Part shown: positions 2,090-54,462 of the stretch, in pieces | Position numbering within the stretch: the stretch's first letter is position 1 | Layout: every line of letters starts with the position of its first letter | Program-made: the position numbers and the translations under genes | Sequence record: OR608733.1 | Length of the DNA stretch: 64,000 nt | Reading direction: 5' to 3' (one strand) | Notes under the pieces: generated by a model | The model's database searches: none | Seen by the model: only the letters and a program-made list of their open reading frames with translations | Told to the model about the DNA's origin: nothing

Positions 2090-4270
<2,181 letters not shown>

Positions 4271-11307: not shown

Positions 11308-11716
11308 TGAAATCTACCTTAATCACAACGGCCTCCAAATCTACAATGTTGGGGAGCCTCTTTTTAGTTTGATGTACGGACCTTCCCTTGAAGGATTCAC
11401 TCTTTTCCTTATTACTTGATTTCTGCCATTTATGCGGGTCACTCGAACAATATAACTTTTCGGTGGCCCGCTTAAACTGTTTTTCTTGAGGGATCTCCTC
11501 AATGTTTTTCTTGGCATAATCTGTAATAAAGTCCTCTAGCCCTTTGGGCATAAAGGCATCCTGAACAGGATGGAATTCTTCAAAGAAAGTATTAATGTAT
11601 TTATCATCATCTACGGTAGACATCTTATTATCTACCATGGTATTTTTTTCTATAAGAGATACCCTCAGGGCATCTTGCCATCTTTCGATGACTTCTGGAA
11701 ATAATTGAACGTTCAT
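11264..11716 (-). CDS. Hypothetical early protein (gp121 position)
   Basis: 150-aa ORF directly downstream of a TATATTAC motif. Confidence 0.65.
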   Translation of the reverse strand: MNVQLFPEVIERWQDALRVSLIEKNTMVDNKMSTVDDDKYINTFFEEFHPVQDAFMPKGLEDFITDYAKKNIEEIPQEKQFKRATEKLYCSSDPHKWQKSSNKEKSESFKGRSVHQTKKRLPNIVDLEAVVIKVDFNGNTKNCGAYSSIS

Positions 11717-24415: not shown

Positions 24416-24904
24416 TTAAACCGATGAATCCATCCACGGTGGATAAACAACCACAATCTGGTTAGGCATGTGATTAGACCAGTCTTCAATTATAGTTCTA
24501 ACATCAGAGAAATCTAATCCACCATTAGCACACCCTAGAGGTGGTATGATAATTTTCCAATCTGGATGAATACAGTCTTCTTCATTTTCCGCAGAATCCG
24601 ATACGTTCTCCATCATCCACTCTAGTCCACGTTCAATGAAACTAATTTGAGATGGGTTTCGCCAGTTATCCTTAGTGGGAAACATCATGAAACGTTTACC
24701 ATCGGATGCTTTGTAAATAACCGGATTACCAATAGTAATAATTCTCTTTTTGCAATCGTGTTTGTATCTTTCAAAAAGTTCAGGATACTTTTCTTTAAAC
24801 GATTTAGCTAAACCAGCGCCCATGACGCCAACAACATTAACAGTGATTAGATAAAGATCACCAGGTACATTGAATATATCTTTACCTATAATAAATTCAG
24901 CCAT
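24416..24904 (-). CDS. Macrodomain ADP-ribosyl hydrolase, DarG-like (gp104 position)
   Basis: 162 aa; VNVVGVMGAGLAKSFK, FPTKDNWRNPS and IPPLGCANGGLDF macrodomain motifs. Confidence 0.88.
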   Translation of the reverse strand: MAEFIIGKDIFNVPGDLYLITVNVVGVMGAGLAKSFKEKYPELFERYKHDCKKRIITIGNPVIYKASDGKRFMMFPTKDNWRNPSQISFIERGLEWMMENVSDSAENEEDCIHPDWKIIIPPLGCANGGLDFSDVRTIIEDWSNHMPNQIVVVYPPWMDSSV

Positions 24905-50559: not shown

Positions 50560-52074
50560 ATGTTTGAGTTATTGTTGTCTTCTGGACTAACAAATACGCC
50601 TATATATTCCGATCCTTATCCAGGTCCTAAAACACTGATAGCTGGGACAAGGGAATTAGGTTTGTATGGTGAAACAACATCTTCAGAATTATTTGGTTAT
50701 GATGATGCAGCTAAATTAGTTAATATGACATTTGGAACAGTAATCAATGATGGACAACCATGGTTAAAGTTCTCTAATAAAAATGTTACTTGTTACATAC
50801 CAAAGAAACCAGCTCGTAAATCAATACAAAAATCACGGCTTAATAATGCCGGACTCCGTAATGGTGACTATGAAGTTAGATTTATGGGGAACATTTATAA
50901 ATTTGGTTTATTAACAATGGCTGGTGCCACATCAGAATGGCAAAGGTTACTTTATAATGTTCACGTATCTAATTTAAATGGTGCTAACTGGCCTTATAAA
51001 TTTACAGATAATGACTTAGGTATTAACCAAGCGGTCGCTGGTGGTATTAGCACTGATGGTACTACTAACTGGGGAAGAGACCCAGGTAGTGATCCAGTTA
51101 ATGACCAGCTCTATCGTGGCTACTATGCGATTGATATAACTAGCTCGTCAAGTAGTGAAACGGGTGCTGCAACCCAAGGTTGGCGTCCAGTGGTTTATGC
51201 TAGTGGTACATATCCATTCGTTAAAGATAATGTTATTAAACTTACTGATTTTGAAACTGATAACGAAATGGCAGCAGGTGCCCAAATAGGTAACTTAGTC
51301 TATTATTACGGTGGTAAGAATAATGCTAATACTGCTCTACGTACATTGAATTTAGCCACGGGTAAGTTAACAACATTACAACCAACTGGTACACCTATAG
51401 CAGTTAAACAATGCTCGGCTGTTGCATTTAATGGTAAAGTATATTTCTATGGTGGTGAAAGTGCCACAGATGGTGTACTCACTAAAGGTATGCAGTGTTA
51501 TGATCCTGCAACTAATACATGGGAAATAAAATCACCAGGTACAATAGCTTGCCGGTATGCACGTGGAACTAGTCTTAATGGGTTAATCTACATATTAGGT
51601 GCAGCTGATACAACTGCAACAAATAATCGTGGATTTACATTAATGTACAATCCAACTACAGATACATATACCAGTGGTGCAGCATTTAATGATACTGGGG
51701 TATATACCCAAGATTATTCAGTGAGTGTTTATAATAATAGCGTATGTGTTATTGGTGGTACGGTTGGTGCTGGTGTTAATACTGGAATCATATCGTACAA
51801 TCAAACCAACAATAATTGGTCTAAGCCAATAACTACAGGTATACCTCTTGGTGCAGCTATTAATATACGCCCATCTGGTGAACTTTATGTAATCGCTGGT
51901 GAAAATCAAAATAATGCACCAATTAAGTATTATGAACCACGATTAGCACGATGGATAAATTTAGGTAATTTAGAAACTGATCTAGTAGATGCAGGTTTTG
52001 CTAATACGTTTAATAATGATGGTAAGATTTATGTTCTAAACGGTAATCAGAATTTAAAATACCAAATTAGTTAA
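50560..52074 (+). CDS. Tail-fibre-family protein (MFELLL N-terminus) with C-terminal Kelch propeller, gp83-like
   Basis: 504 aa; repeats VYYYGG, VYFYGG...YDPATNTW, IYILGA...YNPTTDTY, VCVIGG, LYVIAG, IYVLNG. Confidence 0.75.
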   Translation: MFELLLSSGLTNTPIYSDPYPGPKTLIAGTRELGLYGETTSSELFGYDDAAKLVNMTFGTVINDGQPWLKFSNKNVTCYIPKKPARKSIQKSRLNNAGLRNGDYEVRFMGNIYKFGLLTMAGATSEWQRLLYNVHVSNLNGANWPYKFTDNDLGINQAVAGGISTDGTTNWGRDPGSDPVNDQLYRGYYAIDITSSSSSETGAATQGWRPVVYASGTYPFVKDNVIKLTDFETDNEMAAGAQIGNLVYYYGGKNNANTALRTLNLATGKLTTLQPTGTPIAVKQCSAVAFNGKVYFYGGESATDGVLTKGMQCYDPATNTWEIKSPGTIACRYARGTSLNGLIYILGAADTTATNNRGFTLMYNPTTDTYTSGAAFNDTGVYTQDYSVSVYNNSVCVIGGTVGAGVNTGIISYNQTNNNWSKPITTGIPLGAAINIRPSGELYVIAGENQNNAPIKYYEPRLARWINLGNLETDLVDAGFANTFNNDGKIYVLNGNQNLKYQIS

Positions 52075-52081
52075 CGAAATA

Positions 52082-52104
52082 AACCCTCCCGTAATGGGAG
52101 GGTT
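52082..52104. terminator. Bidirectional terminator
   Basis: AACCCTCCC-GTAAT-GGGAGGGTT, followed by TTATG. Confidence 0.85.
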
Positions 52105-52177: not shown

Positions 52178-52558
52178 TTAATATCCTTCATTGAGTAGTT
52201 CTGCTAGAGCACGTGCCTGTGAAATATCAGTAGAAGCAAAAACATCAGAAAGATAGTTATCATGCTCTTTTGCATTCTGACGCAATTCATCCATTAGATG
52301 TTTATTAGATATCGCCCAAACTTTCCACAGATTTTTATAATCATCATATTTGGGATTATATCCGTCTAGTGGTGGTTTTCCTTTACCAGCTTTCCAATGG
52401 TTGGAGTATATCCGATATCCTTTACAATCTAACTGCCAAGCTTCCTCAATTGTTCTGCCATCAGGAAGCCTTGCGTAAAGAGCCGAGAATCTTTTGTCAC
52501 CAACAGATGAACATTCATATCCTCCTCGGCGCTTCCACTGATATATTACTTTGGGTTC
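52178..52558 (-). CDS. Hidden 126-codon frame with no ATG/GTG/TTG near its 5' end; candidate -1 frameshift extension of the DNA polymerase subunit; possibly NADAR-like
   Basis: EPKVIYQWKRRGGYECSSVGDKRFSALYARLPDGRTIEEAWQLDCKGY...SQARALAELLNEGY*; bounded 5' by an in-frame TAA at 52561-52559. Confidence 0.7.
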   Translation of the reverse strand, partial: EPKVIYQWKRRGGYECSSVGDKRFSALYARLPDGRTIEEAWQLDCKGYRIYSNHWKAGKGKPPLDGYNPKYDDYKNLWKVWAISNKHLMDELRQNAKEHDNYLSDVFASTDISQARALAELLNEGY

Positions 52559-54462
52559 TTATAGGTATTAATAAACTTCTCTAGCAGGGTGTCCATTTTA
52601 GGAGCACCCATGATCTTCTGTGTGATTTCAATAGCATTAACCCTACCACCTGTTAAGTTTACGCCAACTTCACGGCGATGGTGTTCACTAATTCCTTCCA
52701 TCATTGAGAATTCCATCACACATGTTTCACGTGCAATATTTAGAATCTGACTAACGTTAGGATATGTCGACACGATGTCAAGGTCGGCGATATGACAGAA
52801 GATTAAGGTTTTATAATTCGGTAAATCTTTAACACACTGCAATCCATTTGGACCTGCCATGTATGATGGTAGTGTAACAATCCAATCATTATGGCCAATA
52901 ACATATTGATCAAGTTCATGCACCATCTGATCTGAACTTGAACCAATGACACATGGCTCTGGTCTATTCAAATACCAGAAGTGCATATCGTCACATAGTC
53001 GTTTTGGGTTAGAACTAAAGTTCTTATAGTCAGATGCCTTAGAGAATAGACTTATAGAGCGACCAAGGTCATTTACTTGTTCATCAAGTTGTTCTAGTCG
53101 AATGGAGTCGATGATGTTATAAAGACCATATTTGATTTTATGCTTAGTCTGCATCTCACGGTGCCAATCGATACCACCAAGATGTGCAGTTTCTTTAAAG
53201 GTTAACTTACCAAATTCCATTACATATCTAATAGAATCACCATAGGTAAAGTTATCATTTAATATAAAATCATCCACCGGTACCCATTCATTACTACCTA
53301 CATTTTTAATATATTTAGTAATAACACCACCAGGGCGGTCTACCAATTGTTTATTAAAACCTTCAATAAAATCTTCTAAGTCCTTATCATTTTTAATGGT
53401 CGTAGATTTATCGATGTTTAGTTCTTTTCTAAGAATAGACTCTAACCGATAGTTAGGATCACGTCCTTTAGCTAATCGAGTTACTCGATAAGTTGACATA
53501 GAATCGATGCATTGAAAACTAGCGGGTGCTGTAATCCAATGCCATTGATCCTCTGGTCCTTTAGATTTAGTGACCCCAGATGCAGTGGTGGTCATAGGCT
53601 CATCAATCTTAAAATGGAAATACCTATAATTCTTAGGTACCGATGGATCAGAAAAAATATCAGCTGGATTAACGCCATAGTGTTCTAATGTTTTTAAGAT
53701 TCTGCCAATGTCGAAGCTAATATTCCAGAATGCGAAGAAATCTGGTTTCCAGGTATGTAGTCGTTTAAAACATTCAATAATAATATCTACTGGTGTTTCA
53801 ACAACCATTACTTCAATATCTAGACCACGTTCTTTAATTAGATGTGATAGTACCTCTTCTTTTTGTGCTTGTTCTAATGTCTCTTTCACTGGATCTTCAA
53901 TATCACTAACCCATCGTTTTAAATAGGCTAGGAAAGCTTTGTTCTTATGTGTAACTGACATACAGATAATCTGGCCATCGTTCTCAGCTTCATAAACGTT
54001 GGTTTCGATGTCACCGCCAGCAACAGTGTTTAGAGAGATTAGACCAGGATAACGTTCTTGATAATCATGCTTCAGATAACAGGTTGAACTAACATCACTG
54101 CCATATAGGTAAGGACTACGCGCTAGTTGACGAAGAGATCTAGCCGAATAGTCACCTAGGATTTTACTAATCTTACGTTTCATGTCAATTTGAGTTGACA
54201 TGTATTTAACTAAGTTACGCTCATATTCGTAATCTTTCTTTTCTTTATGGTTACGCATTCCTTTTGCGGTAATCCAAAAAGGACGCTGGTAGTTTTCCCA
54301 CATCCTTAAATTATTTGCAGTTGTACCATCTTCAAAATGAATTCGTTCTTTAACGAAATGTGCATCTGTAAACTTACCAAATTGATCAGTACAATAAGTA
54401 ATATGTTTGGCTTCAATGCCCTTAATCTTTTTCTTATTTGTAACCTGTTGTTCATTAGACAT
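52546..54462 (-). CDS. gp82: Split family-B DNA polymerase subunit (3'-5' exonuclease plus motif A)
   Basis: 638 aa; Exo I GDIET, Exo II WNISFDI, Exo III YNIIDS; motif A DLDIVSTYP; motifs B and C absent. Confidence 0.85.
   Translation of the reverse strand: MSNEQQVTNKKKIKGIEAKHITYCTDQFGKFTDAHFVKERIHFEDGTTANNLRMWENYQRPFWITAKGMRNHKEKKDYEYERNLVKYMSTQIDMKRKISKILGDYSARSLRQLARSPYLYGSDVSSTCYLKHDYQERYPGLISLNTVAGGDIETNVYEAENDGQIICMSVTHKNKAFLAYLKRWVSDIEDPVKETLEQAQKEEVLSHLIKERGLDIEVMVVETPVDIIIECFKRLHTWKPDFFAFWNISFDIGRILKTLEHYGVNPADIFSDPSVPKNYRYFHFKIDEPMTTTASGVTKSKGPEDQWHWITAPASFQCIDSMSTYRVTRLAKGRDPNYRLESILRKELNIDKSTTIKNDKDLEDFIEGFNKQLVDRPGGVITKYIKNVGSNEWVPVDDFILNDNFTYGDSIRYVMEFGKLTFKETAHLGGIDWHREMQTKHKIKYGLYNIIDSIRLEQLDEQVNDLGRSISLFSKASDYKNFSSNPKRLCDDMHFWYLNRPEPCVIGSSSDQMVHELDQYVIGHNDWIVTLPSYMAGPNGLQCVKDLPNYKTLIFCHIADLDIVSTYPNVSQILNIARETCVMEFSMMEGISEHHRREVGVNLTGGRVNAIEITQKIMGAPKMDTLLEKFINTYKNPK

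Follow-up and report, generated by a model that had tools for sequence, protein, structure and literature searches.

We analysed a 64,000-nucleotide (nt) stretch of DNA from sequence record OR608733.1, referred to here as the window. It comes from a jumbo phage of the phiKZ species; over the part tested, it matches phages 124.01, 2PS, and 6B with 100% identity and phiKZ with about 99%. phiKZ is a model jumbo phage that forms a nucleus. Behind PHIKZ082 (gp82), the gene for one half of the replicative DNA polymerase, the window holds a hidden coding frame for a compact NADAR-like domain, shifted by -1 relative to gp82. Computation established the coding status of this frame, the family to which it belongs, its fold relationship, and the recoding architecture that connects it to the polymerase. 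The reading that we favor, and consider probable, is that a -1 slip of the ribosome adds a NADAR-type eraser domain to gp82, which likely acts on ADP-ribose on single-stranded DNA (ssDNA).

A conserved coding frame behind gp82

All coordinates refer to the window, and gp82 and the hidden frame lie on its minus strand. The gp82 open reading frame (ORF) spans 52546-54462, including its TAA stop, and encodes 638 amino acids (aa); it matched the DNA polymerase family phrog_3011 with an E-value of 4.5e-242, and public records name it PHIKZ082 or DNA polymerase. The protein is DNAP-N, the N-terminal subunit, which contains the N-terminal domain, the exonuclease, and a portion of the palm of a B-family replicative polymerase that is split in two; the other half is gp50 (preprint 10.64898/2026.09.30.755723). 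Translation of the minus strand from position 52558 gave a single open frame, -1 relative to gp82, that continues to a TAA stop at 52178-52180. This frame opens just three codons ahead of the gp82 stop. Its coding part (52181-52549) comprises 123 codons, from Val to Tyr, and was recognized as a compact NADAR-like domain from its translation, its match to phrog_9995, an AlphaFold2 (AF2) model, and the link to NADAR described below. The fusion of gp82 and the domain is predicted to comprise 638 + 123 = 761 aa.

The original prediction, made by a model from the letters of the sequence, had placed a possibly NADAR-like domain at 52178-52549; this interval runs from the codon directly after the slippery site described below through the stop. 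The motifs that it quoted (GDKRFSALYA, TIEEAWQLDCKG, LWKVWAISNKHLMDELR, LSDVFAS, and SQARALAELL) are all present in the minus-strand translation, and in that order.

The 122 residues that begin with the ATA codon at 52544-52546, which the comparison of junctions marks as the site of a lost start, matched phrog_9995 (unknown function, 124 positions) from end to end with an E-value of 1.7e-55. At least 500 homologues were found in 5.8 billion proteins, mostly as stand-alone proteins of 120-130 aa; among the matches listed from this search, the identities were 52-87%, and none had a Pfam domain. When 1.84 billion cluster representatives were searched with a profile, 871 matched. In an alignment of 114 members, 19 columns were invariant. 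The ratio of nonsynonymous to synonymous substitution rates (dN/dS) among the chimallivirus copies ranged from 0.02 to 0.24, including pairs in which both copies lack a start codon, and was 0.024 between the phiKZ and PhiPA3 domains. The hidden frame was intact in 47 of 47 phiKZ-like records, with protein identities of 97.6-100%. By these sequence comparisons, the frame is a true coding region and not a chance open frame, and phrog_9995, the family to which its domain belongs, is a large group of phage proteins that is unannotated and strongly conserved.

The hidden frame contains no ATG, GTG, or TTG before the internal Met85, and the list of ORFs of at least 40 aa shows none there; for this reason, the public records hold only two fragments of it, of 38 and 29 aa. 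The first is PHIKZ082.1 of the phiKZ record (52178-52294, 38 codons), the C-terminal piece of the domain from Met85 onward; phrog_33573, which covers only residues 85-122, was built on this fragment alone. The second is located at 52429-52518 (minus strand), and in locus L001 the pair is found at 3079-3195 and 3330-3419. What phiKZ-like records list as small "hypothetical proteins" 3' of gp82 are parts of the hidden domain, predicted from internal starts or from starts in other frames. Gene callers systematically truncate or miss the gene for this domain in chimalliviruses.

Kinship with NADAR and the candidate active site

The link between the phiKZ-type domain and NADAR runs through a sister subfamily, typified by LAV_00070 of Sphingobium phage Lacusarx, which first surfaced as weak tblastn matches. 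In hhalign, the phiKZ and Lacusarx types matched each other with a probability of 99.8% and an E-value of 1.7e-27. The Lacusarx type has the exact NADAR spacing, [ST]-I-E-x2-Y-Q-x2-K-x-F, together with a D-x-F-G loop, and 104 of its 114 members matched Pfam family PF22397 (NADAR-DarT1, the DarT1-associated NADAR antitoxin) at E<=1, the best at 9.3e-7. The sole PDB match of the Lacusarx-type profile was 8bat, the DarT1-associated NADAR of Geobacter lovleyi (E 1.5), and the alignment was collinear over LE.SSK, FSAF, S[IV]E..[YF]Q..KVFE.G, and D..F...CQA. The same structure was the top PDB match of the Lacusarx-type AF2 model (predicted local distance difference test (pLDDT) 95), with an E-value of 1.9e-3, a probability of 1.00, a template modeling (TM) score of 0.68, and a root mean square deviation of 3.7 A; the Phytophthora NADAR 8bau came second (TM 0.47), and the rest were at or below 0.31.

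The AF2 model of the phiKZ type (pLDDT 96.9) had only two global matches in the PDB, Escherichia coli YbiA (2b3w, TM 0.53) and the Phytophthora NADAR (8bau, TM 0.43), with all others below 0.25. In a viral structure library, the weak matches beyond its own family were enriched for NADAR proteins. A greedy hhalign alignment was collinear and matched invariant positions to invariant ones: FSA[LF] was paired with FSNF, Glu34/Gln38 with E48/Q52, Gly54-Lys55 with G78-R79, and the C-terminal helices with one another. The pairing of motifs that the original prediction had made by eye is essentially that of the profile alignments.

Several results count against this kinship. No Pfam NADAR match was obtained for the window protein or for any of the 114 phiKZ-type members. 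Compared by hhalign with alignments of YbiA-type NADARs, the phiKZ type reached probabilities of 0.1-0.2%, also after 18 viral NADARs had been added, and against T4 gp30.3 (AdfN) it reached 0.3-0.6%. The Foldseek E-values for the NADAR matches of the phiKZ-type model were 5-6, that is, not significant, and most Lacusarx-type members scored below the Pfam gathering score (P0389, 11.9 bits vs. a cut-off of 27). The spacing of Glu34 and Lys42 is x7 in the phiKZ type vs. E-x6-K in NADARs, a one-residue insertion. The phiKZ domain, whose first strand comprises residues 3-5, also lacks the N-terminal beta-beta-alpha extension of the DarG1-type NADARs. The NADAR case for phiKZ rests on one transitive step, and the direct link is not significant. 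The predicted fold was borne out by the Lacusarx bridge (PF22397 and 8bat) and by the YbiA match, and not by the direct profile tests; of the proposed comparisons with YbiA, T4 gp30.3, and DarG1, the Foldseek searches returned global NADAR folds, whereas hhalign against the YbiA type and T4 gp30.3 did not support the relationship. Taken together, the profiles and models place the phiKZ domain as a miniaturized (about 122 aa) member of the NADAR superfamily, nearest to the DarG1/BC4488 branch.

NCBIfam and PADLOC gave no significant match for the window protein, and searches of the PDB by sequence and by profile with the phiKZ-type family found no NADAR; PDB matches to L3 and mS48 at E>0.007 were judged to be chance. 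A scan of IMG/VR for relatives of T4 gp30.3 returned only near-identical copies, of no use for a profile. DUF4326 and DUF488-N3, to which weak Foldseek and Pfam signals pointed as the true family, turned out to be separate domains fused to it; in P0121, the DUF488-N3a match sits between two copies of the domain.

The candidate active site was mapped with Ile1 at the ATA codon, and conservation was counted over 257 family members. In the DarT1-associated NADAR of E. coli C7, the catalytic residues are E88, K95, and D171 (Schuller et al., PMC11543638); an Asp replaces YbiA E125 in the BC4488/DarT1 branch, and a His does so in T4-like phage NADARs (PMC11543638). Glu34 (52445-52447), a Glu in 255 of 257 members, is the candidate catalytic residue; through the Lacusarx type, hhalign and HMMER align it with E48 of YbiA and E88 of C7. 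Lys42 (52421-52423; 254/257) is the candidate phosphate-binding Lys and corresponds to K55 of YbiA and K95 of C7. In the Lacusarx type, the counterparts of these two residues are E33 and the invariant K40. Asp101 (52244-52246; 256/257) follows the strand 98-100 and is the candidate for the site of YbiA E125 and C7 D171; the invariant D95 of the Lacusarx type falls on the 'TD' of 8bat in a sub-threshold HMMER segment. A basic loop, Gly54-Lys55-Gly56-Lys57 (52376-52387; K55 in 256/257, G56 in 247/257), is a candidate for binding the pyrophosphate of ADP-ribose. Each of E34, Q38, K42, and D101 is retained in 254-256 of the 257 members. The near-invariance of polar residues (E34, Q38, K42, K55, D101, and Q110) in stand-alone, fused, and giant contexts is typical of an enzyme, and the active site would consist of Glu34, Lys42, and Asp101 together with the basic Gly-Lys loop.

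Judged by sequence, the domain resembles the DarG1 and other DarT1-associated NADARs (PF22397; 8BAT; E. coli C7) in the order of the core elements, in a candidate Glu and Lys pair on the first core helix, and in a candidate Asp for the YbiA E125 site. It differs from them in size (about 122 vs. 219-254 aa), in the one extra residue between Gln and Lys, and in being phage-encoded, attached to a polymerase, not beside a DarT gene, and below the detection of the Pfam model. YbiA and the Phytophthora NADAR (PF08719; 2B3W, 8BAU) share with it the collinear elements FSxF, [ST]xE..[YF]Q..K, the G-[KR] loop, and the C-terminal helix; however, the phiKZ domain is about 40 residues shorter, its D-x-F-[AG] is a reduced form of the END-x-YWG loop, and the profile match is not significant. 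AdfN (T4 gp30.3; PMC11825919) is likewise an orphan phage member of the NADAR superfamily, and by analogy the proposed role is alike, the erasure of DarT1 marks during replication. AdfN is made free, from a start codon of its own; the T4-like NADARs have a His at the E125 site, for which the phiKZ family has a candidate Asp; and the Glu and Lys of T4 AdfN are E36 and K43 (E-x6-K), whereas the phiKZ type has x7.

The domain is also found fused to other proteins. Among 88 fusion proteins of middle size, 18 carried DUF4326, eight SLOG, and three RNase H; other partners were DUF488-N3a, an AlkB-like oxygenase, guanylate kinase, and a superfamily 1 helicase. It is embedded in N4-type virion RNA polymerases and in proteins that bear LPD38, a polyvalent-protein domain, or HExxH motifs, which suggests, from the protein sequences, that the domain may be delivered along with the injected DNA. 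The giant hosts are 38 proteins of 1.3-6.1 thousand aa (P0133-P0266; loci L111, L115, L116, L119, and L120); giant ORFs of several cyanobacterial genomes contain the domain as well. The neighboring gene families include SLOG, NUDIX, NAMPT, Macro, and DUF4326; dUTPase and dCTP deaminase also occur among the fusion partners and neighbors, and together with the fusion partner guanylate kinase these form a nucleotide and NAD theme. NADAR is a usual partner in the NAD/ADP-ribose network (PMC9503650, PMC7824862), and the fusion partners and neighbors indicate that the domain belongs to this network. In 185,579 species genomes, the domain was found at only 13 loci, and no DarT or ADP-ribosyltransferase family was present among the neighbor families listed. 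In Bacillus phage SP-15 (L127, 909-1953), a Lacusarx-type gene adjoins a gene for a YpsA-type SLOG protein, with stop and start overlapping, and in Rhizobium phage TM30 (L128, 1-1833) such a gene lies about 1.3 kilobases downstream of a NUDIX hydrolase gene.

The same context bears on the substrate. It is unlikely, though it deserves serious weight, that the domain is a NADAR relative that acts on something else: ADP-ribosylated RNA or primers, cytidine-ADP-ribose, a signaling nucleotide, an NAD-derived conjugate, or the nucleotide or template pool that it would cleanse. The surroundings with SLOG, DUF4326, NUDIX, NAMPT, guanylate kinase, dUTPase, and dCTP deaminase fit small-molecule metabolism as much as DNA repair, and NADARs also act on riboflavin intermediates (PMC11543638) and on cytidine-ADP-ribose (PMC12945103). 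The N-terminal extension of DarT1-associated NADARs forms a basic groove proposed to bind ssDNA (PMC11543638), and the phiKZ domain is without this DNA-binding extension of DarG1. A link to RNA or primers would fit the RNase H fusions and the fact that RNase H is a partner of the gp82-gp50 polymerase (10.64898/2026.09.30.755723). However, the nearest structural and Pfam relatives are those of the DarT1-associated branch, of which the Asp at the E125 site is the signature, and the fusions to DNA polymerase, AlkB-like oxygenase, helicase, and virion RNA polymerase point to nucleic acid.

The junction with the polymerase in phiKZ and its relatives

The 3' end of gp82 reads ...AAC CCA AAG TAA. It contains a slippery heptamer, C_CCA_AAG (52549-52555), in the X_XXY_YYZ register with the gp82 frame (codons Pro637 and Lys638), and a -1 slip on it leads directly into the hidden frame. 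The zero-frame TAA (52546-52548) lies immediately 3' of the heptamer and is a candidate stimulator of slippage. Stop codons beside a slippery site ('shifty stops') can stimulate frameshifting, and by analogy the adjacent stop may do so at C_CCA_AAG. The window contains two copies of CCCAAAG; the other (11542-11548) is out of the X_XXY_YYZ register with its ORF.

We fetched 80 viral loci carrying the domain. In 16 of these, the domain directly follows a gp82 homologue, and 62 located elsewhere could be scored for the start codon. No ATG, GTG, or TTG was found at the N-terminus of the domain in 14 of the 16 polymerase-adjacent loci, compared with 0 of the 62 elsewhere (Fisher p 1e-13); the latter are either segments of long ORFs or stand-alone genes, which nearly all start with ATG and in a few cases with GTG or TTG. 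The codon homologous to the phiKZ ATA is ATG in PhiPA3, in an overlapping TAATG, GTG in 201phi2-1, ACA in L013, ACT in L016, GTA in Phabio, and GTT in L015.

The junctions with a -1 frame fall into three classes. C_CCA_AAG was found in seven lineages (phiKZ, PhiPA3, L013, 201phi2-1, L016, PS119XW, and Phabio), and G_GGA_AAG followed by TAG in one (L015). The third class has A_AAA_AAG, the heptamer of dnaX, 31-103 nt ahead of the polymerase stop (Noxifer/L055, L020, L021, L024, L041, and L056/L058); its seven loci were counted as five distinct junctions. In phiKZ, PhiPA3, L013, L015, L016, PS119XW, and Phabio, the stop directly follows the heptamer; in 201phi2-1 it comes one codon later. In each of the 13 relatives with the domain in the -1 frame, one of the three heptamers stands in frame at the domain boundary, 1 to about 15 residues before the conserved first strand of the domain. 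For any one independent gene end, the probability that an in-frame X_XXA_AAG occurs by chance no more than 35 codons away is about 0.9%. The base before CCA, a third codon position, is always C, after codons for Asn, Pro, Ser, Ala, and Val; this constancy across five amino acids indicates selection at the nucleotide level. The homologues in PhiPA3 (gp084) and 201phi2-1 (gp143) start with ATG and GTG, respectively; their junctions still have the heptamer in frame and the domain at -1.

Other lineages join the two parts without a slip. At three metagenomic chimallivirus loci, the polymerase frame continues through a single in-frame TAG, with CTA or CTG right after it, into a domain that has no start codon (L068/L069 at about 2995-2998 and L085 at about 2980-2983). 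Genome-wide recoding of TAG was ruled out for these loci, in which the neighboring long ORFs have no internal TAG, and the junction looks, from its sequence, like stop-codon read-through rather than a reassigned code. Direct fusion of gp82 homology and the domain in one ORF was found in P0222 (L124; 698 aa, adjoining the PhiKZ_MCP gene) and in P0146 (L125). Across the lineages, polymerase and domain have been joined in at least four ways in evolution. Comparative genomics (the startless polymerase-adjacent loci, the in-frame heptamers, the TAG junctions, and the direct fusions) strongly supports the suggestion, made in the original prediction, that the domain is tethered to the replicative polymerase; the set ratio that it also assumed would follow from slippage.

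The heptamers resemble those of known -1 frameshifts, such as the A_AAA_AAG of E. coli dnaX (tau/gamma), the IS3-family transposases, and the G/GT tail chaperones, in having the X_XXY_YYZ form ending in A_AAG, and they would likewise yield two products per mRNA at a set ratio. The slip in gp82 would extend a polymerase subunit by an enzyme domain, whereas the slip in dnaX shortens the product, and no hairpin or Shine-Dalgarno-like stimulator was found for gp82.

Some observations at the junction speak against programmed slippage. Downstream RNA structure was neither conserved nor unusually stable (z -1.3 in phiKZ and mostly 0 to -2 in the relatives), and Rfam identified no frameshift element. 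Upstream, no consistent Shine-Dalgarno-like stimulator was found; the adjacent zero-frame stop of the CCCAAAG and GGGAAAG classes was the sole recurrent feature. The literature searched contained no report of a trans-frame protein or of a gp82 frameshift, and no proteomic evidence of the fusion was found; the 2026 cryo-electron microscopy (cryo-EM) study of gp82-gp50 mentions neither the fusion nor the hidden frame. PhiPA3 and 201phi2-1 have their own ATG and GTG, and RVTF4 and Psa21 their own GTG and TTG in the +1 frame, so the free domain is evidently functional, too. A GGAGGA/TCCTCC hairpin was rejected as a stimulator; it occurs in PhiPA3-like sequences at a distance of about 23 nt from the site, and phiKZ has not kept it. 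Transcriptional slippage is unlikely, as the CCCAAAG class has no run of A.

In an alternative that we regard as improbable, the domain is made as a free protein of 122 aa by re-initiation at the ATA (in TAATA) after the gp82 TAA, and the heptamer is kept merely for the Pro-Lys end of the polymerase. ATA can serve as a weak near-cognate start codon, PhiPA3 has the TAATG overlap, and 201phi2-1 has GTG at the homologous codon; RVTF4 and Psa21 use GTG or TTG in another frame, and outside the chimalliviruses the domain is mostly encoded by a stand-alone gene with ATG. However, the homologous ACA, ACT, GTA, and GTT codons of L013, L016, Phabio, and L015 are implausible as starts, and in the A_AAA_AAG class the gp82 frame overlaps the domain coding region by 31-103 nt, with neither a start nor a nearby stop for coupling. 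The constant C before CCA across five preceding amino acids, and the direct in-frame fusions and in-frame TAG of other lineages, also argue against re-initiation and for recoding. In RVTF4 (L008) and Psa21 (L009), the junction (about 2480-2525) has the domain in the +1 frame, a GTG or TTG 24 nt before the polymerase stop, and no slippery heptamer; from the sequence, these two phages apparently make only the free protein.

Attachment to the polymerase need not imply catalysis. The domain could be a structural or regulatory appendage that has lost its activity, for example one that binds the 'little finger' (LF) insertion of gp82 or another replisome protein, with the NADAR fold reflecting ancestry; this we consider very improbable. 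The LF insertion has been reported only in Pseudomonas chimalliviruses, and the authors of the cryo-EM study proposed for it an unknown partner confined to those phages (10.64898/2026.09.30.755723). It comprises gp82 residues 350-415 (window about 53218-53415, minus strand). The chimalliviruses listed as having it (Noxifer, Psa21, PS119XW, Phabio, PhiPA3, 201phi2-1, and phiKZ) are the same Pseudomonas phages that have the NADAR-like domain after gp82, the domain is far smaller than the characterized NADARs, and its Lys spacing is altered in the phiKZ type. Against an inert appendage, the catalytic-type polar residues are near-invariant across all contexts, and the direct-fusion homologue P0222 is without the LF insertion. 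That the phiKZ frame is a decaying, unexpressed remnant is hardly credible: relative to PhiPA3 the ATG has become ATA, and annotators call only fragments, but the frame is intact in every phiKZ-like record, its dN/dS against PhiPA3 is that given above, and startless copies, each accompanied by a slippery site, occur across six or more divergent lineages.

The macrodomain AdfM and the possible role of the domain at the replication fork

Alongside the hidden candidate, the window encodes a known arm against DNA ADP-ribosylation. The ORF at 24416-24904 (minus strand) overlies PHIKZ104 of phiKZ with 98.6% nucleotide identity and encodes a DarG2-like macrodomain; it matched Pfam Macro (4.8e-7), PADLOC DarG (3.6e-39), and the DarG macrodomains of Mycobacterium tuberculosis and Thermus aquaticus in the PDB (5m3i, E 8.2e-25, and 5m31, E 3.2e-19). 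The claim that this macrodomain is of the type that reverses DarT2 modification agrees with the PADLOC and 5m3i matches and the identity to PHIKZ104, and had already been published: gp104, named AdfM, enters the phage nucleus and strips DarT2-derived ADP-ribose from DNA (2026 Cell Reports, PMC13309987). Its Asn23 is present in the window, as in PMC13309987. AdfM is needed since some DarT2 reaches phage DNA despite the nuclear shell (PMC13309987); that paper makes no mention of a chimallivirus NADAR. AdfM and the hidden domain are encoded by the same phage and would share the logic of an antitoxin-like ADP-ribose eraser inside the phage nucleus. In contrast to the hidden domain, AdfM has a macrodomain fold, is specific for thymine, is a free protein imported via PicA, and has been proven experimentally.

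How efficiently ribosomes slip, and the enzyme activity, substrate, and biological role of the domain, are matters of inference. In our favored reading, a fraction of ribosomes would slip one base back on C_CCA_AAG, aided by the adjoining stop, and produce a gp82 of about 761 aa that carries the domain; in phiKZ, the domain could be made only as this C-terminal extension of DNAP-N. The domain would hydrolyze ADP-ribose off the bases of phage ssDNA, with guanine as the best guess given the analogy to DarG1 and to the phage NADARs (AdfN), which remove DarT1 marks (PMC11825919). As part of the polymerase, the eraser would reach both the phage nucleus and the fork, in a fixed, sub-stoichiometric ratio, and would complement the thymine-specific AdfM (gp104).

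A wider version of this reading is possible, and we offer it only tentatively. In it, the Pseudomonas chimalliviruses use recoding (three interchangeable heptamers, TAG read-through, and fusion) to turn a set fraction of their polymerase into a guanine-specific eraser at the fork, the partner of AdfM. Fusion would be the means of getting the enzyme inside the phage nucleus and of ridding the template there of ADP-ribosylated bases. The domain would then found a large 'mini-NADAR' family that is also present in injected N4-type virion RNA polymerases and polyvalent proteins, and the slip would be the first known case of a programmed frameshift that lengthens a phage replicative polymerase.

Orphan phage NADARs, -1 frameshifting, and AdfM are already known. 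According to the literature searched, the NADAR kinship of the family, the hidden copy in phiKZ, and the recoding-based link to the replicative polymerase are new. The cryo-EM study of the phiKZ polymerase and the AdfM paper both date from 2026, and neither mentions the hidden frame, of which the records hold two meaningless fragments. If the favored reading is true, the phiKZ polymerase exists in two forms, one of them with an enzyme attached, and a testable function is gained for more than 800 sequence clusters (the phiKZ type, which has no Pfam model, and a sister subfamily of similar size). It would also mean that counter-defense against DNA ADP-ribosylation can be wired into the replisome, and that recoding is a way to bring cargo into the phage nucleus.

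Three further observations concern the polymerase genes and the surroundings of the hidden frame. In L125 (1550-3711), an NCBI metagenome contig, the gp82 homologue is present as two adjoining ORFs of 482 and 236 aa, parted at 2998/3001; the second contains the polymerase tail and the NADAR-like domain in the same frame. The gp82 homologue of PhiPA3 (L012) is split by about 345 nt without homology (2420-2765), just past the region of the catalytic Asp (query residues 562/563). The final 69 residues are read in a different frame, and in the public annotation the polymerase stops at the interruption. L068/L069 show a comparable gap of about 370 nt (2304-2674) at that place; judged by sequence, these gaps are possibly introns or other intervening sequences. 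Finally, a perfect GC-rich hairpin, CCCTCCC...GGGAGGG with A/T-run flanks, is located at 52084-52102, between the hidden frame and a convergent gene at 50560-52074 on the plus strand; from its sequence, it is likely a bidirectional terminator common to both.

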